Shown: positions 11,710-20,119 of the stretch, in pieces | How positions within the stretch are numbered: the first letter of the stretch is position 1 | How the letters are laid out: each line of letters begins with the position of its first letter | Sequence record: NC_023610.1 | Length of the DNA: 64,000 bases | Direction: 5' to 3' (one strand) | Program-made: the position numbers and the translations under genes | Notes under the pieces: generated by a model | The model's input: the letters and a program-made list of their open reading frames with translations, nothing else | Told to the model about the DNA's origin: nothing | Database searches by the model: none

Positions 11710-12294
11710 ATGTTCGAAAAACTGGAAGCGGCTGTCGGCAGTAAAGTGTTGTACGGGGTCATCTGGATTGCGACCCTGACCTTCACGTACTGGTTCGGCG
11801 GACACATTGAAAAAGAGAAGACCACGGCGGTCGACTCGGCGGTCTCGAGTGTCTCCACGCAATTGGGGACTATCCTGACCAATCAAATTAACACGCAGGT
11901 CGGTGGGATAAACGCCAGACTGCTTGGAGATACCAATGCGATTAACCTCATTCTTCAAGGTGGCTTCAAAAACAATGACGATGCTGATGCTCGTCTGCAT
12001 AACCTCACTAATGCTGGGGTGTACGTCAAAGCCAGTCCTGGTACCCCAGGCGAAACCAAAGCCGCTGGTACTGCCGCCGCTGGACCCGGCAATAATGCAA
12101 CCTATCGAGCCCAACTTTCAGACCAGGCTCGAGACTTTTTTGCAGGCGAAGCTAAACGCGCCAACCAATGTGCCGTTCAACTCAAAGGCGCTCAAGATAC
12201 CCTCTTGAGTTGGCAGCGCGCTGTTGATGAGTACAACCGAACTGTTGCTGACCCCAATGGTTACGACCGCGTTCAACTACCCGATAAAAAATAA
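11710..12294 (+). CDS. rz: i-spanin (Rz-like)
   Basis: 194 aa; single N-terminal TM (VLYGVIWIATLTFTYWFGG), periplasmic helical region, C-terminal Cys; contains a nested lipoprotein ORF. Confidence 0.8.
   Translation: MFEKLEAAVGSKVLYGVIWIATLTFTYWFGGHIEKEKTTAVDSAVSSVSTQLGTILTNQINTQVGGINARLLGDTNAINLILQGGFKNNDDADARLHNLTNAGVYVKASPGTPGETKAAGTAAAGPGNNATYRAQLSDQARDFFAGEAKRANQCAVQLKGAQDTLLSWQRAVDEYNRTVADPNGYDRVQLPDKK
11975..12208 (+). CDS. rz1: o-spanin (Rz1-like lipoprotein) fully embedded in the +1 frame
   Basis: MTMLMLVCITSLMLG-C lipobox, Pro-rich mature part (PQAKPKPLVLPPLDP), SD-like AAGGTGG upstream, 77 aa. Confidence 0.8.
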   Translation: MTMLMLVCITSLMLGCTSKPVLVPQAKPKPLVLPPLDPAIMQPIEPNFQTRLETFLQAKLNAPTNVPFNSKALKIPS

Positions 12295-12305
12295 AAAAAG
12301 AACCT

Positions 12306-12342
12306 CCTGAGGACCCGAAGGTCCTCAGGGGTTTTATGCTGC
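12306..12342. terminator. bidirectional terminator followed by TTTATGCTGC
   Basis: cctgaggacc-cgaa-ggtcctcagg; UUCG loop and U-tract on the minus strand. Confidence 0.85.
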
Positions 12343-13041
12343 GATGGGAAAGGAAGGTGTGAAGTTGGCGCTATACCTTGCTTTGCGATAGCAGGCAAAT
12401 TCCGGGATATAAAGGTTGGAAGCAGTACCATCGCCAATCTGAAAGATGGTTGACGCCGCAATGTTGGTCAACGAGTCCCGTTCAGTCAGACTGTAATCGC
12501 TCCCCGTGAATACTGCTAACCCTTGCTTCACCCCATTCAGGTAGACGGAGATTTTCCCGTTACGTCGCTGCATGACGAAATGTATCCAGCGATTAGTTCC
12601 GGTTGCTCGCGTTGTACTGGTTGAGTAGTTCGAGTTACCTATATCAGGTTGGGTTGAAACCTGTAACCGGTTACCGTACCCGTTATCCCCAAAGCGCATG
12701 ATTAACCCGCCCCAACTGGATGTATTCGGGCGTTGGTACATCAAAGTCGTATAACCATTACTGGTCTGGGTACAATAGAAAGGAAATTCAATCGTGAAAT
12801 CCCCGGTCCCTACATCCATTGACGTCAATGGGATGATGGGGAACTGTTTGGTTCCCGTGAACAGTGCCTTGCTGTACCCCGAAAGGGCTACCGGTGGTGT
12901 GACCACATCACTAGCAACCAGGTTAGTGAGACTGATAACCTGTTTCCCGGTCGATAGTCCTTTCTCGAAATTATAACCGATATAGGGCTGCTCGCCCGGA
13001 ACAAATCCGTTCTTCTTACCGAGGAGTATGGCTTCTAACAT
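12334..13041 (-). CDS. LamG/concanavalin-A-like domain protein (putative adhesin)
   Basis: GTGDFTIEF...WIHFVMQRRNGKISVYLNGVK...ARYSANFTP LamG-like pattern; N-terminus MLEAILLGKK. Confidence 0.7.
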   Translation of the reverse strand: MLEAILLGKKNGFVPGEQPYIGYNFEKGLSTGKQVISLTNLVASDVVTPPVALSGYSKALFTGTKQFPIIPLTSMDVGTGDFTIEFPFYCTQTSNGYTTLMYQRPNTSSWGGLIMRFGDNGYGNRLQVSTQPDIGNSNYSTSTTRATGTNRWIHFVMQRRNGKISVYLNGVKQGLAVFTGSDYSLTERDSLTNIAASTIFQIGDGTASNLYIPEFACYRKARYSANFTPSFPIAA

Positions 13042-13051
13042 GGTCTACCCC

Positions 13052-13801
13052 TTAAGGAATGATTTCCAAAACAGGACGCCAACCTAAATAGGCCTGAACG
13101 TCAGTGATAACAGGTGCACCCACTGTCCAGATGCTACTCCAGACGGTTGCAGCACGGGCTAGGCTGTCGTTGGCATTGACCTGCTCACGACACAACTGTA
13201 ATCCGCCGGGTGTAGTGGTACCACCAATCAACATCAGGTCATTGACCGGGTCGTACGTTTCCCACTTCGGACCTTCCTGCGCAGAAACAGTAGTGGAGAC
13301 AATATTGGGAATCAACCGCATCCAATCCGACCCCAACATCTCCGTTCGGTTAGTGTAGTTCCCGTTATAAGGGAGTTTACCCAGACCGGGTTGCAGGACG
13401 TTCCACAACATGACCTTGTACGTAACCCCGTTCAATACGATGGTCCGTAACTGGTTACGCGGCGTTCCGTTGTTGAACAGCCCGTTGTCGTTTGACCCCC
13501 AGACTAAACCCGAAGAGTAAAGCGCACTCCACCCGTAAGCAGAGGTGATGGGTTTCTTCGGTGTATAGAGGAGGCGACCGTCAATCCCGAATTTCAACCA
13601 CGGGATGGTTGTGTTGATAGCCGACCCCACATTGCCCCCGAGTGCTCGCAATGCGGCTACTGAGGGCATAGCGCTGTTCGCCACCTCTCCGTAGAACTCC
13701 GTAAAACGCGCACTGTTGTTGGGGTCGACGTATCGCCCAATGGGCGTGGTCGCTCCGGGGTATCTACCGCTTTTCTTCCCAGCTAACAAAAGTTCTTGCA
13801 T
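13052..13801 (-). CDS. virion protein of the phiKZ gp131-like GWRPVLE family
   Basis: Likely start MQELLLAGKK (SD GAGG); FYGEV, WLKF.IDG, YKV.L and terminal GWRPVLEI motifs. Confidence 0.7.
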   Translation of the reverse strand: MQELLLAGKKSGRYPGATTPIGRYVDPNNSARFTEFYGEVANSAMPSVAALRALGGNVGSAINTTIPWLKFGIDGRLLYTPKKPITSAYGWSALYSSGLVWGSNDNGLFNNGTPRNQLRTIVLNGVTYKVMLWNVLQPGLGKLPYNGNYTNRTEMLGSDWMRLIPNIVSTTVSAQEGPKWETYDPVNDLMLIGGTTTPGGLQLCREQVNANDSLARAATVWSSIWTVGAPVITDVQAYLGWRPVLEIIP

Positions 13802-13814
13802 GGTTTCATCCTCG

Positions 13815-14585
13815 TTACGCGCTGGGGTAAAGGGTTGCCGTGTCCGCAGTGAACCCGGTGGTCGGGAACAGTGCCCCGGCACGCAGTCGGTAACGTTCTA
13901 CCATCCCCCTGACATCGGGACTGTTAGCCACAGACTGCGACATGATACCGACCTGTTGGTTACCCGTTGGAGTCAGAATCGTGTACGTCAACGTGTCAAT
14001 CAACACCCCGTTACAGAAGAAGTAAACCTTGCCGCCAGAGTACATGACTGCAATGTGTTTCCAGTCGGTGCCGTAGAATGCATCGTTCTGTTTCGTTCCG
14101 TTGATTCTGGGCGCAGCCTGATTGTTCCAAATCCCAACCAAGCGGGCGGTGTTGGCGTACCCCAAGGTACACTGCAACCGGTTGGTCCAGTAGCCGTTTA
14201 CCGTGAGGTCGGGATAAACAATCAGGGGGATTAACGGTTGGTGTTTGTTAACCGGGGAAAGGACGTCCAAGTCCCGTTTCCAATAATCCACTGTCCAGGC
14301 ACTGGTCACAAATCCTGGTGCAATAGTCCCGGGTGGAGTGGCGACAGAACCATGTCCCATTTCCACACCCTTTCCGTATTGAAAACTTTCGGCACCCAAT
14401 GAAGGTAATAGTGGGGGCACTGCTGCACCGGCGGTTGGGATAACACTGGTGACCTTCAAAGTTTTTCCGGTGTAATCGACAAAACCAGTGTCCCTGAAGA
14501 TACTCGAGTCCCACGCCAACATCTCAGTGCCCAATGCCCACGCTGCGGACGGTTTCCTTCTTCCCATCAAGAGCGCTTCAATCAT
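13815..14585 (-). CDS. LamG-like domain protein (putative adhesin)
   Basis: WTVDYW...WKHIAVMYSGGKVYFFCNGV pattern; N-terminus MIEALLMGRRK. Confidence 0.65.
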   Translation of the reverse strand: MIEALLMGRRKPSAAWALGTEMLAWDSSIFRDTGFVDYTGKTLKVTSVIPTAGAAVPPLLPSLGAESFQYGKGVEMGHGSVATPPGTIAPGFVTSAWTVDYWKRDLDVLSPVNKHQPLIPLIVYPDLTVNGYWTNRLQCTLGYANTARLVGIWNNQAAPRINGTKQNDAFYGTDWKHIAVMYSGGKVYFFCNGVLIDTLTYTILTPTGNQQVGIMSQSVANSPDVRGMVERYRLRAGALFPTTGFTADTATLYPSA

Positions 14586-14594
14586 ACCTCCCCC

Positions 14595-15374
14595 TTATAC
14601 GTCGTCTGCATTTTCAGGGAATGCGCGCGTGTCACCCCACATGATTCTTACGCCACCCACACCTGCCCCGGCATACGCACGGGCGTTGTCACTCGAACGA
14701 CGAGCCACTCCTGCGGATACACCACACCGAGTACCTTTGACCAATGTCCCATACAGCTGTGAGCCTATCCCGTTGTTCCCGCCACTGATGTTCACGCCGT
14801 TGACGGTGTTACTGGTCATGGTACCAGCCTTACCCGCGGTCGTGTCGGTCGGAGTTGCCCCTGCTGTAGTACCACCGCCGTCTCCGTAGTACCCGCCCGT
14901 ACCGGACCCCGGCGCACCTTGGGTACTACTGGTTGCAATCCTTACACCACCATCCCCGCCACCGGCTCCCAGAGAGTTGGCCACCATTGCATCTTTGGTT
15001 GCCCGCCCGCCAGACGCTTTCAAAAGCACGGTGGAACCGCGGAGGATACTGGTGTCCTTACCGTCTACCCAACCAATCCCACCGGTTGTATACCCAAGGT
15101 TACTGGTTCCCGCCCCGACAATGATGGTCAGTGTTTCACCGGGGGTAACTGAAATCGCATTGTTGTAACGCAGGGAGCCACCGACCCCACCAACGGTCGT
15201 GGTCACGCCGTCAAAGGTTCCGTACGCTCCATGCGCCCCTGCACCAATAGCCACTGCGCTGATACTCTTTACGCCGTCGGGTACAACCCAGTTAAAGGTT
15301 CCGGCGGCAACCCACATCGCCTGGCTAGGAAGAACCTCGACTTTCTTCTTCCCACCCATCACCATTTCTAACAT
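14595..15374 (-). CDS. glycine-rich virion/fibre-type protein
   Basis: Likely start MLEMVMGGKKK; GTFNWVVPDGVKSISAVAIGAG and G-rich repeats ending GGVRIMWG. Confidence 0.7.
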   Translation of the reverse strand: MLEMVMGGKKKVEVLPSQAMWVAAGTFNWVVPDGVKSISAVAIGAGAHGAYGTFDGVTTTVGGVGGSLRYNNAISVTPGETLTIIVGAGTSNLGYTTGGIGWVDGKDTSILRGSTVLLKASGGRATKDAMVANSLGAGGGDGGVRIATSSTQGAPGSGTGGYYGDGGGTTAGATPTDTTAGKAGTMTSNTVNGVNISGGNNGIGSQLYGTLVKGTRCGVSAGVARRSSDNARAYAGAGVGGVRIMWGDTRAFPENADDV

Positions 15375-15386
15375 ACGCGCCTCGAA

Positions 15387-15429
15387 GCATAAAAGAATGA
15401 CAGCGCTACCCGAAGGTAACGCCGCCATT
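15387..15429 (-). terminator. strand-specific hairpin followed by TTTTATGC
   Basis: Minus RNA aauggcggcguuacc-UUCG-gguagcgcugucauu is a 15-bp stem only if three G-U pairs are allowed. Confidence 0.8.
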
Positions 15430-15436
15430 GTTAGCG

Positions 15437-16006
15437 TTAGACTTTTCGTCGCGTGGCCAGGAAGTCAAAGAAGGCCCCAACAAATCCACCACCTGCCTGG
15501 CTGTCACCTAACACCACCGACATCAGGTCACGGCGCTCTTTGTTGATTAAGCCCATGAACAACCAACCAATCCCCATCACAGGGCCAACCACCACCAGAA
15601 CCAGGAACCAGTCCGGGAACTCTTTGCGGTCGATGGACACCCAACAGATAGTGGCCGCGAACATCAGCGCCATGAGGGCGAGAACCACACACATGGTCAC
15701 ACCAATCACGGCCCGGACTTTCGCTTCCCGTTGGTATTCAGGGGACACGGTTAACGGCGGCACCGCGTTGGGTGTTTTCTCCACCGTTTTATCATCTACG
15801 TCCAGACTCATGAATTCCTCCTGGTGCTCTGGGGTCAAAAGAGCGACAGAATCAATCACGTGTTGCAACATTAAGCAGTCGCTACACGCGACGGCAAGCT
15901 CTTCGTATCCCTGGAGGGTTTCTACTAAGCTCTTGCCGTTACTGAGCTGAATCCCCGAGACGCCCAGCGTCGTCGGTTTCACTTGTAACAGCTCGCTTAC
16001 TTTCAT
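15437..16006 (-). CDS. two-TM membrane protein (holin candidate)
   Basis: 189 aa; soluble N-terminus, two hydrophobic helices, basic C-terminus (TRRKV). Confidence 0.55.
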   Translation of the reverse strand: MKVSELLQVKPTTLGVSGIQLSNGKSLVETLQGYEELAVACSDCLMLQHVIDSVALLTPEHQEEFMSLDVDDKTVEKTPNAVPPLTVSPEYQREAKVRAVIGVTMCVVLALMALMFAATICWVSIDRKEFPDWFLVLVVVGPVMGIGWLFMGLINKERRDLMSVVLGDSQAGGGFVGAFFDFLATRRKV

Positions 16007-17305: not shown

Positions 17306-17654
17306 AGTAGAACGGTTTACATACCGCAATGAAAAGGATGTCTTTTACCTTTTCGGTTTCAGGCAGCTGGTCGTACGGCACGAGGTTAGGGTGTTTCTTC
17401 CCTTCTCTGTCGTAGTCACCGTGCTCCCACCCTTGTTCCATCATCCAGGTCGACCACTGTTTGTGGGCATCCGCTGGACTGGAGAGTTTGGAATCAATGG
17501 CGTTGGCTACCGCGTGGATGTAATGCTCTTTATCGTCCTGTGACAGGGTGTTCCATTCCGGGCGGGTTTCGTTACCGACTTCTTTGGTCCAGACGTTGTT
17601 CACGGCATGGGCCTGCTCAGCAATTTTTGCCAAGATTTGAATTGGTGGCTTCAT
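17304..17654 (-). CDS. RyR-domain protein
   Basis: H..W...MMEQGWEHG...KKHPNLVPYDQLPETEKVKD is the RyR repeat signature. Confidence 0.8.
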   Translation of the reverse strand: MKPPIQILAKIAEQAHAVNNVWTKEVGNETRPEWNTLSQDDKEHYIHAVANAIDSKLSSPADAHKQWSTWMMEQGWEHGDYDREGKKHPNLVPYDQLPETEKVKDILFIAVCKPFY

Positions 17655-18253
17655 TCGGGTTGCTCATCGTCTGGGAGGCTGGGGTAACGGTAGCCAGCGA
17701 GCGTAGGGTAGATAATCGCTTCACTGAGGTCGTTGTTCGGCGGCGTAAAGCCATCGAGGTCGGTGGTCTTAATCGCTGTGTTCAGGTGCGGAACGCCGTC
17801 CCAGAGACCGATGTCAAGAATCCCGTGCCAACCGAGCGAGTCATCGGCGAATATCGCCGTGAGGTTCCCTCTTCCATCAATAAGATGGACGGTTTGCGTA
17901 AAAAGCGAGGAGTCTTCAAAGTCGGTAGCCAGGTACTGCGGTAACCCGTATTGGATACAGAAACGCTTGAGGACGGCCGCAACCGTTTCCCCTTCACGAA
18001 CCTGCACCATGGGAGTAATCCCTTTGAACAAAAGCGAGAATTCCACCCGGTGGTATTCGAAATCGCGGTAGCTGAAGAACCGGTTGGTCAAGTCACGGAC
18101 CCAGATGGTGTTGTTGTCCGTCTGGGAATCGTAAGACTTGTACTCGATAGACAACTCAGAGGGAGCCCAGTTAGGTCCCTCAGGATTTGCCGCCTTAATC
18201 AACCGGACCAGCTCGTCACGAATAACCCCCGTTTGCGTCAGGTTATCCATCAC
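17651..18253 (-). CDS. virion structural protein, paralog of 19271..20119
   Basis: Shared core with 19271..20119; two C-terminal L..AI....L.G[FY]..P motifs. Confidence 0.65.
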   Translation of the reverse strand: MMDNLTQTGVIRDELVRLIKAANPEGPNWAPSELSIEYKSYDSQTDNNTIWVRDLTNRFFSYRDFEYHRVEFSLLFKGITPMVQVREGETVAAVLKRFCIQYGLPQYLATDFEDSSLFTQTVHLIDGRGNLTAIFADDSLGWHGILDIGLWDGVPHLNTAIKTTDLDGFTPPNNDLSEAIIYPTLAGYRYPSLPDDEQPE

Positions 18254-18262
18254 GCCCCCTTA

Positions 18263-19192
18263 TTAGCTGACGGTGATGTTAGAGAGCAGGGAAGAACGTG
18301 CCATCGCTAACAGGTCGTTGTTGGCTCCAGCAGACAGCGCAGAACCCGTCAACATCGGTTCGGTCGCACCGACTTCCATGTTGATGTTGAAGCCTTCGTT
18401 GTCGATGGACAGCTGTTTGTAGGTGGTCACGTGCGTAATCACCTGGCAACCGATGACTTCTTTAAAGTTGATGGCAGCACCACCGGCCCCAACGCTTTGG
18501 ATGTTACGGTCAACACCGGAGCAGAACGCCAGCTCAGAGATGATAGCGCGCTTCTCATTGTTCCACAGCACCGCCGCCACGTTGAACAGTTCGTTCACGT
18601 CGAACAGGTCGAAGGCGATGGTCACTGGCATGGTAGTGGACAGGAAGTCGTTAGCCGTCGTCGTGGCTTCATCCGGTAACACCACCGGGCGCACCGGGTT
18701 CAGGTTCGCATTACTGAACACGTACTCTTCGGTGTTGCTCACGCCGTTGACTACCGTGGTGTGCATGACTTTGGCGGATGTACCGGAAAGGTCAATACGC
18801 TTCAGGTAATACGCAAAGTAGTTCTTGCCGTTGTGCTGCTCGCTGCGGCGCAGGCCGTAGTTCAGACGCAGGTCAGCCGACAGGTCGTTGGCTTCTTCGC
18901 GCAGCACAAACGGGATATGATTCCAGCACGCACAATCTTCGGGCGCATGTTTGTACAGGTCGATGATGGTATCGGTCCCGTCGACAATGCTCGAGGTGTG
19001 ACCTTTGTTACCAATCGCGTAGTAACCAAAACGAGGATTTTCACCCTGGCCCAGAATCGCGTTCTGCTGAATCTGGAGCAATTCGTTGAGGGTCGTACCG
19101 GCCAACAGGGGTTGTTGTTTCCCAGCCAGCAAGTTATCTTGCAGCAAGCTGCCAATCGCCGTCCGGGTTACCGGACTAATCTTAACGGCCAT
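18263..19192 (-). CDS. conserved baseplate/virion protein
   Basis: Likely start MAVKISP; YYAIGNKGH, HIPFVLR and YFAYYLKRI motifs recalled from phiKZ-like virion proteins. Confidence 0.65.
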   Translation of the reverse strand: MAVKISPVTRTAIGSLLQDNLLAGKQQPLLAGTTLNELLQIQQNAILGQGENPRFGYYAIGNKGHTSSIVDGTDTIIDLYKHAPEDCACWNHIPFVLREEANDLSADLRLNYGLRRSEQHNGKNYFAYYLKRIDLSGTSAKVMHTTVVNGVSNTEEYVFSNANLNPVRPVVLPDEATTTANDFLSTTMPVTIAFDLFDVNELFNVAAVLWNNEKRAIISELAFCSGVDRNIQSVGAGGAAINFKEVIGCQVITHVTTYKQLSIDNEGFNINMEVGATEPMLTGSALSAGANNDLLAMARSSLLSNITVS

Positions 19193-19270
19193 CAGAGTAT
19201 TCTCCGGGTTGCTTATTAAAGGGTAGACACATAAGAAACCGGTGGGATGCTCTCCCACCGGCTCTTAGGG

Positions 19271-20119
19271 CTATGACGGCAAGTTGTAATGCAACACCAG
19301 ATACCCGGCAACGTTGTCGCACATGTTCTCGTCAAGACTGATAACTACACAGTGCGTGTACCAGGTACTGTTCGCTGGAACCGGGGCTCCGCTAATCAGA
19401 CCGTTCCACGTTACCAGTGAACCACGCAGGTTCCAGTCCTGTGGTGTTACCTCATTAACCCATGGCGTTTCCACCTTGCGGTTAAAGGAGTCCAGCGTTT
19501 CCCCGATGATTTCCTGTCCTTGTGGGAACAAGGCTTGCAGTTCATCGTAGGCGTACGAGAAGTCGAACCCGTACAGGAACAACGGACCTTGAATCTTCAC
19601 CGTCTGCATGGTTGGGTAGTTAATCCCGGCCAACTGATGGTTTGTCATCACGGTTTCCAACTGGAGCTTACGGCGACCGATATGTACGGTGAGCTTCCCG
19701 GTAAACGCCGGGTTGTTCTCACGCACCACGAGGTCAACGGCGTATGGCACCAGCTGCGGATTCAGGTAACCGTCGTAGATGTCAGCGGCCGTTAACTGGA
19801 ACCCAAAGCGTGCATTGATGTCCGATAACAGTTCAGACTTCTGGGTTTGTCCTTGCGGTGCCACCCAGACCTCAACGTCGGCAAAGATGACCCCGATGTC
19901 AGGACGGTTGTGGGTCAGTTCCCAGGTACCTTCGCGCCCGTACTCCGGAACACCAATCAGAGTGGACTTGGTATTCACTTCCGTATCGGAGGTAATGAAC
20001 GGTGTGATATCAATCAGCTTCACTTCTTCAGCGGTGAAGTTAATGTTGGGGTTATCCAACTTCAACTGGCGGAAAAAGAGTTGCCACGTGGGTAGATTGT
20101 AGTAGCCATCGGCAGTCAT
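19271..20119 (-). CDS. virion structural protein
   Basis: 282 aa; contains LETVMTNHQLAGINYP; C-terminal NVAGYLVLHYN. Confidence 0.65.
   Translation of the reverse strand: MTADGYYNLPTWQLFFRQLKLDNPNINFTAEEVKLIDITPFITSDTEVNTKSTLIGVPEYGREGTWELTHNRPDIGVIFADVEVWVAPQGQTQKSELLSDINARFGFQLTAADIYDGYLNPQLVPYAVDLVVRENNPAFTGKLTVHIGRRKLQLETVMTNHQLAGINYPTMQTVKIQGPLFLYGFDFSYAYDELQALFPQGQEIIGETLDSFNRKVETPWVNEVTPQDWNLRGSLVTWNGLISGAPVPANSTWYTHCVVISLDENMCDNVAGYLVLHYNLPS

Follow-up and report, generated by a model that had tools for sequence, protein, structure and literature searches.

In T2/T6/S16-type phages, the adhesin gp38 sits on the tip of the long tail fibre gp37, to which it is attached by a folded N-terminal domain and not by a 10-residue peptide. 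In Klebsiella podophages, the variable binding protein RBP2 is docked on the branching domain of RBP1 by means of a short, conserved peptide at its N-terminus (PMC6872550; PMC13352976). Here we describe four tandem genes, gp196 to gp199, of the Erwinia fire-blight jumbo phage PhiEaH1 (NC_023610, 218,339 bp, genus Iapetusvirus), whose products share a 10-residue N-terminal peptide, hereafter called the tag, in front of different C-terminal domains, the heads. The genes lie within a 64,000-nt stretch of this genome that was analysed as a whole (the window), and coordinates refer to the window unless they are given as record positions. Judging from sequence comparisons, we regard the tag with moderate confidence as a candidate virion-docking address for interchangeable lectin-type heads, the likeliest site being the tip of the fibre gp080 or the protein gp081 encoded next to it.

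The RBP2 proteins resemble the tagged proteins in their short conserved N-terminal peptide and variable body, an arrangement that would permit several binders per anchor and the exchange of heads. The sequence of the tag is unrelated, though, and it occurs in myoviruses of 140-320 kb. Moreover, the podophages possess one trimeric depolymerase spike per phage, whereas up to eight small, non-fibrous lectin-type proteins are encoded per genome here, and the partner is known and tested there, while we infer it here. Gp38 is a separate adhesin of small size (~250-260 aa) with many glycine motifs, located on the conserved end of a trimeric fibre. Gp199 is likewise glycine-rich and has 259 aa, but in the gp38 system there is one adhesin per fibre type instead of many head types with one tag. 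The principle of a peptide-docked variable binding protein has already been established in Klebsiella podophages. The tag itself is new to the literature that we searched, in which we found no description of it, of its spread over some ten families or of its presence in two distant groups of myoviruses.

The gp196-199 block and its tags

Positions 12000-16000 of the window were 100% identical to PhiEaH1, where the genes are named CF95_gp196 to gp199, and 97.9% identical to vB_Ea277G. All four genes reside on the minus strand. The most upstream one, gp199 (14595..15374, corrected start), encodes 259 aa with the tag MLEMVMGGKK and a glycine-rich head (Pfam Gly_rich_2). It is followed by gp198 (13815..14585), the 256-aa product of which contains the tag MIEALLMGRR and a LamG/ConA-like head, and by gp197 (13052..13801, corrected start) with 249 aa, the tag MQELLLAGKK and a head of the phiKZ gp83/SPN3US paralog-family-B type ending in GWRPVLEIIP. 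The last gene, gp196 (12334..13041), encodes 235 aa with the tag MLEAILLGKK and again a LamG/ConA-like head. Four tandem genes of these sizes with a shared 10-aa N-terminus had been predicted originally, and both the open reading frames (ORFs) and the motif scan agreed with this.

The intergenic spacing within the block amounts to only 9-13 nt. A terminator-like hairpin of 15 pairs with a TTCG loop, followed by CTTTTATGCT, is located in the gap between gp200 and gp199 (15396..15429, minus strand) and marks the upstream boundary. A second terminator-like hairpin 3′ of gp196 (12306..12329, minus strand) is shared with the convergent gene gp195 and is terminator-like on both strands. Downstream of the first hairpin we found TATG, which is the late-promoter core in phiKZ-type phages. 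Because of the hairpin boundaries and the short gaps, gp196-199 look like one transcription unit, in line with the earlier proposal of a single unit bounded by hairpin and TATG elements.

Each of the tags fits the motif M-x-E-h-h-h-x-G-[KR]-[KR]. In the six-frame translation of the window this motif was detected four times, in every case at the starts of gp196-199. The DNA pattern ATGNNNGARNNNNTNNTNNNNGGNARRARR also gave four matches in the whole 218,339-bp genome, all at the same starts, while the reversed control gave none; the tag-coding segments of 30 nt (minus strand) are 15345..15374 in gp199, 14556..14585 in gp198, 13772..13801 in gp197 and 13012..13041 in gp196. When a similar DNA pattern was searched in IMG/VR, none of the at least 117 matches listed was situated at the start of an ORF of at least 100 aa. 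A chance origin of the four-gene tag is excluded. In a MAFFT alignment of the four proteins, only M1, E3, G8 and P15 were invariant near the N-terminus, and the other proteins of the block showed 18-26% identity to gp196 with many gaps. The same tag residues are encoded by differing codons in the four 30-nt segments, where synonymous sites vary freely. Thus, the tag is conserved as protein and not as DNA, and recent gene conversion is not the cause of the similarity.

The heads had been described as LamG, GWRPVLE-type, LamG and Gly-rich, an assignment that was borne out by our searches. Pfam Laminin_G_3 (gathering cut-off 27.6) was detected in gp196 (38.0 bits, residues 75-222) and gp198 (29.0 bits, residues 149-239), and Gly_rich_2 (PF21722, gathering cut-off 24.3) in gp199 (38.4 bits, residues 24-241), which also matched PHROG 4474 (1.3e-60). 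The PHROGs sort the four proteins into three groups. A Pfam search with gp197 gave no domain match. In BLASTP, this protein was similar to a 470-aa family-B member of SPN3US (1e-19), the alignment ending with W-F-P-V-L-E-L, and tblastn matched 119 phage records. By its head similarity and the W-x-P-V-L-E motif, gp197 is a member of the phiKZ gp83/SPN3US paralog family B.

Sequence searches of solved structures yielded no chain for gp199 at E up to 1 and only chance-level matches for gp197. An AlphaFold2 model of gp197 built from a 12-sequence alignment reached a predicted local distance difference test (pLDDT) score of 68.7 and a predicted template modelling (pTM) score of 0.75. Residues 1-10 had a pLDDT of 39, i.e. 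below 50, and are modelled without secondary structure, while residues 11-100 scored 81-91. In this single usable model the tag is therefore predicted to lie outside the fold. Foldseek found nothing at E <= 0.001 when the model was compared with solved structures. The exhaustive VIA-align list was dominated by folds of the C-type-lectin-like domain (CTLD) type, among them PvdO, TvpA, the C-terminal domain of Legionella Lcl, EgtB, Mtd and natural killer (NK) receptors, yet with Z scores of only 3-5.1. According to the model, the head of gp197 probably has a C-type-lectin-like (CTLD/FGE-like) fold.

Two of the tags become visible only after correction of the annotated starts. RefSeq places the starts of gp197 and gp199 27 and 18 codons, respectively, upstream of the corrected ones, which adds window 13802-13882 and 15375-15428 to the genes. 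A GAGG-type Shine-Dalgarno (SD)-like sequence precedes each of the corrected starts (13801 and 15374) at a distance of 5-7 nt. The annotation of vB_Ea277G adopts the shorter starts for the counterparts of both genes, and in four relatives of gp197 from databases the protein starts with the tag. Moreover, the long form of gp197 would result in a 68-nt overlap with gp198, and the annotated 5′ extension of gp199 coincides with the 15-pair hairpin. We concluded that the RefSeq starts of both genes are too far upstream, which upholds the two corrections made in the original prediction. Similar cases were encountered in other phages. The annotated start of Ea357_314 of Ea35-70 (L007:8282-8995) is too late, so that the tag was missed, that of 201phi2-1 gp452 (L011:4857-5609) is probably 13 codons too early, and a 273-aa Gly-rich tagged ORF of F1M1E (L012:5001-5822) is not annotated in the public record.

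The genes that flank the block gave weak matches of the lysis type. Gp195 (11710-12294, plus strand) gave weak matches to Rz-like spanins (E about 0.01-0.06), and gp200 (15437-16006, minus strand) gave weak holin-like matches (E 0.0055) and contains hydrophobic segments.

Census of the tag in 12 phage genomes

A position matrix built from 24 tags was used to scan 12 complete phage genomes. Candidate starts were all ATG, GTG and TTG codons with 100 or more open codons behind them (n=33,118; mean score -18, standard deviation 6.8), and a score of at least 9 was counted as a match. Only 39 candidates reached this value, 36 of which were located within 35 codons of the upstream stop. For the matches that had not been used as seeds, this applied to 20 of 22, as compared to 25% of all candidates. 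Eight tagged ORFs each were found in PhiEaH1 and Ea35-70, six in POP17, five each in F1M1E and PCH45, three in SSBI34, two in PVP-SE1, and one each in phiTE, phiKZ and 201phi2-1, while the scan of Goslar and SPN3US gave none. One match of Ea35-70, at 235276, may be a false positive, since it has a GTG start lying 72 codons from the upstream stop. The consensus of the 39 tags reads M, L/F/N/I, E (38/39), L/M, L/M, L/M/T, x, G/S/T, G/K, K/G, and in 32 of the proteins the first proline occurs at positions 9-20.

Besides the block, the tagged genes of PhiEaH1 comprise gp082 (record 71286) and gp085 (record 74082), both with a gp197-type head, a gene for a LamG protein (record 95223; 63 bits) and one for a 213-aa protein (record 2479). 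All eight are preceded by an SD-like sequence. The four genes considered as the cassette in the original prediction indeed form a transcription-unit-like block, but they do not make up the whole system, because these four further genes are located elsewhere. The same peptide was found on the same heads in PCH45 (two tandem genes), Ea35-70 (gp113 and Ea357_314) and SA002 as well as in the Vequintavirinae F1M1E, SSBI34 and POP17. All five Vequintavirinae genomes of the census (140-155 kb) were tagged, with one to six genes each. A search for the tag across jumbo phages had been suggested; it proved to be widespread on unrelated heads, but is not specific for jumbo phages, being equally common in the Vequintavirinae.

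To compare the heads, the first 25 residues of the 39 proteins were cut off and the remainders compared by BLAST, which resulted in 15 clusters. Among them were the gp83 type and the Gly-rich type with seven members each, and a LamG group with six. Gp197, phiKZ gp83 and 201phi2-1 gp452 fell into the same cluster. The others comprised several LamG-like groups of 215 aa, a type of 165 aa, another of 385 aa for which weak RCC1-like matches were obtained, and singletons, one of which gave a weak Kelch-like match. We estimate that the heads represent about ten apparently unrelated families (LamG, CTLD-like, Gly-rich, propeller-like and unassigned ones). At this level of comparison, the census showed the tag to be a discrete module that is conserved as protein and is combined with some ten seemingly unrelated families of heads, spread over two distant lineages of phages. 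Receptor-binding proteins with a docking peptide are likewise characterized by a short N-terminal peptide that is conserved while the binding proteins themselves are otherwise unrelated.

Three further observations concern the tag. The metagenomic relative P0011 (354 aa) possesses the tag, followed by an FN3-like domain and a gp197-type head; tag and FN3 module are thus not strictly alternatives. The sole tagged gene of phiTE, phiTE_203 (L302:2215-2968), which gave a weak LamG match, is located immediately downstream of the pseudo-ToxI RNA, an RNA with a part in the escape from ToxIN abortive infection. Finally, the product of the PhiEaH1 gene gp205 (DUF7208; 18263-19195) contains, close to its N-terminus, the internal sequence SLLQDNLLAGKQQP, which is similar to the tag of gp197.

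The gp080 fibre and association with the virion

The fibre protein gp080 of PhiEaH1 is 1292 aa long and contains collagen repeats, a true foldon of the fibritin type and, at the C-terminus, a domain of ~120 aa. A fibre of this family is encoded by all ten tag-bearing genomes including the five Vequintavirinae, whereas Goslar and SPN3US have neither the tag nor the fibre. In eight of the ten genomes the gene directly downstream of the fibre gene encodes a DUF4376 protein (gp081 in PhiEaH1). The tagged genes of PCH45 directly follow the fibre and DUF4376 genes, and the same arrangement exists in a second array of PhiEaH1, gp082-087. This array (record NC_023610 66573-77232) consists of gp080, gp081 and six gp197-type paralogues, two of which are tagged, while in the other four an N-terminal FN3-like domain precedes G-P-G-P. 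Over its last 152 aa, gp080 is 48-56% identical between PhiEaH1 and the Vequintavirinae, the middle part showing lower values (34-42%). Such a conserved fibre end would be more in keeping with a platform than with a protein that binds the receptor itself. The fibre gene of phiTE and PVP-SE1 is situated just after the gene for the major head protein, and the gp080-type fibre might belong to the neck or the head and not to the baseplate.

For two tagged relatives of gp197 an association with the virion has been recorded. The record of 201phi2-1 gp452, whose likely true start is the tag MIDLLMTTGG, bears the note 'identified as virion protein by mass spectrometry', and the annotation of phiKZ gp83 (tag MFELLLSSGL) describes a structural protein of the virion. 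In SPN3US, paralog family B comprises 20 virion proteins, which were detected in tailless particles (PMC5694885). These proteins are relatives of the gp197 head without the tag. The three groups are virion-associated relatives of gp197, of which gp83 and gp452 share its type of tag, while the members of family B have DUF7941 or FN3-like N-termini in its place. The idea of a plug-in cassette was therefore sustained in so far as a discrete tag occurs on unrelated lectin-type heads, is placed outside the fold in the gp197 model and is present on relatives recorded as virion proteins.

We propose that the eight PhiEaH1 proteins follow a common plan, in which a peptide of ~10 residues, M-[L/F/I/N]-E-[L/M]-[L/M]-[L/M/T]-x-[G/S]-[G/K]-[K/G], is joined by a short, usually proline-containing linker to a head that is small, globular and of a type known to bind carbohydrates. 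The peptide would be the attachment address for one common site on the particle. Alternative heads could then be mounted side by side, and shuffling of genes would swap heads without changing the site. This site would most likely be the conserved distal end of gp080 (foldon plus ~120 aa) or gp081, the DUF4376 protein of the adjacent gene. The mode of attachment may be compared to that of gp38, the adhesin at the tip of gp37 in T2 and S16, and to the docking peptide of RBP2 in the Klebsiella podophages.

Several points weigh against this proposal. The support by the fibre is weakest in the phiKZ group, as the fibre of 201phi2-1 lacks the conserved tip, the tip of phiKZ gp146, the homologue of the fibre, is only 34% identical over 105 aa, and no gp081-like match was obtained in phiKZ or 201phi2-1. 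The structural atlas of phiKZ names neither gp83 nor gp146 in its main text. The census covered only 12 genomes from two lineages, which are phylogenetically dependent. In the literature searched, we found no virion in which a tagged protein of the LamG or Gly-rich type had been detected by mass spectrometry. The genes of the block and many other tagged genes are embedded among genes for nucleotide metabolism and replication (tmk, tk, DNA polymerase), not in structural modules.

The last two points are also in favor of the possibility that gp196-199 are not part of the virion at all, but intracellular or released lectin-like proteins active in host takeover, superinfection exclusion or the binding of cell debris, whose N-terminus serves another partner such as a DUF4376-like chaperone. 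Some of the tagged genes adjoin tRNA genes, the available proteomics of RAY and Deimos-Minion derive from crude lysates, and no virion proteome of PhiEaH1 was found in the literature searched. On the other hand, tagged proteins of the gp83 family are recorded as virion proteins in both 201phi2-1 and phiKZ, and the tag strictly co-occurs with a structural fibre. We therefore consider a function outside of the virion unlikely.

Other possible addresses and the meaning of the tag

The tag might also direct the proteins into or onto the head while it is assembled, and not to a fibre. In T4 a capsid-targeting sequence, also an N-terminal peptide of ~10 residues, suffices to address different proteins to the particle. 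It aims at the interior of the prohead and is cut off by the prohead protease (PMC5694885). A role of this kind for the tag is suggested by the SPN3US family B in tailless particles, two members of which are flagged 'Head ejection?' (PMC5694885), by the note 'structural head protein' in the phiKZ gp83 record, by a tagged gp197-type gene of Ea35-70 that comes after the major capsid gene and by the position of the phiTE and PVP-SE1 fibre genes mentioned above. The members of family B are untagged, however, and the phiKZ note has little locational value, as genes for the sheath and fibres bear it too. Folds of the lectin type would be expected in an exposed position and not in the interior of a capsid. 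Unlike the T4 sequence, the tag is not followed by a protease-type cleavage motif; inspection of gp196-199 disclosed neither L/I-x-E nor S/A/G-x-E after the tag in any of the four proteins. Altogether, targeting to the head appears improbable.

Another conceivable partner were the DUF7941 proteins, which form baseplate-anchored filaments bearing carbohydrate-binding domains (PMC13742148), the 'filament cloud' of chimalliviruses. PhiEaH1 has three DUF7941 genes, gp079 (record 66016-66564), gp204 (17651-18253) and gp206 (19271-20119), the latter two being located on the strand of the block at a distance of 2-5 kb. Their linkers (LSEAIIYPTLAGYRYP, LETVMTNHQLAGINYP) are loosely similar to the tag (MLEAILLGKKNGFVP), and SPN3US fuses a gp197-type head directly to a DUF7941 N-terminal domain. 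For the Goslar proteins gp22 and gp23, head-to-tail docking has been reported, a short unstructured segment of one protein being proposed to dock on a globular domain of the next, and the carbohydrate-binding heads sit on a flexible array (PMC13742148), features that are reminiscent of the tagged proteins. The DUF7941 linkers of PhiEaH1 carry L-x-x-V-V-x4-L-x-G-L-x-Y-P, in the region that the Goslar study proposed for the head-to-tail assembly of the filaments. As a partner of the tag, DUF7941 was demoted by the genome census, since the distributions do not track each other. All five Vequintavirinae are tagged (one to six genes each) yet devoid of DUF7941, whereas Goslar (10 matches) and SPN3US (17) have no tagged ORF. 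In addition, the linkers lack the conserved G-K-K of the tag, and most tags lack the L-x-G-L-x-Y-P of the linkers. The Pfam search of gp196-199 revealed no DUF7941 domain (PF25613), and the proteins of Ea35-70 and SA002 that consist only of the DUF7941 C-terminal domain do not start with a tag. Docking of the heads onto these filaments is accordingly quite improbable.

That the shared N-terminus is a functionless remnant of gene duplication or a translation signal at the nucleotide level, as the tandem arrangement, the similar sizes and the common LamG fold of gp196 and gp198 might suggest, is already close to refuted and has hardly any probability left, given the low, gappy identity outside the tag with three Pfam/PHROG groups, the freely differing synonymous sites and the retention of the tag on about ten head families in Vequintavirinae and phiKZ-like phages.

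The reading of the tag as a docking address can be taken further. The 'MLE' peptide may be a portable display address that crosses lineages, moving together with the collagen/foldon fibre between Vequintavirinae and phiKZ-like jumbo phages, so that up to eight lectin, propeller and glycine-rich heads on one fibre tip would constitute a combinatorial array for host recognition. We put this forward tentatively and regard it as rather doubtful. If it is true, any protein of choice could be placed on these virions by means of this tag.

Should the tag serve as a docking address, many small proteins without an assigned function, which have domains of a carbohydrate-binding type and are scattered over the genomes of jumbo phages and Vequintavirinae, would become exchangeable host-recognition heads on a common fibre, and two very different groups of phages would be linked by a module of fibre plus heads. 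The tag, which annotation pipelines frequently overlook, would then be a simple sequence marker for such proteins. It would also provide a handle on the host range of biocontrol phages of Erwinia, Pectobacterium, Salmonella and Cronobacter.

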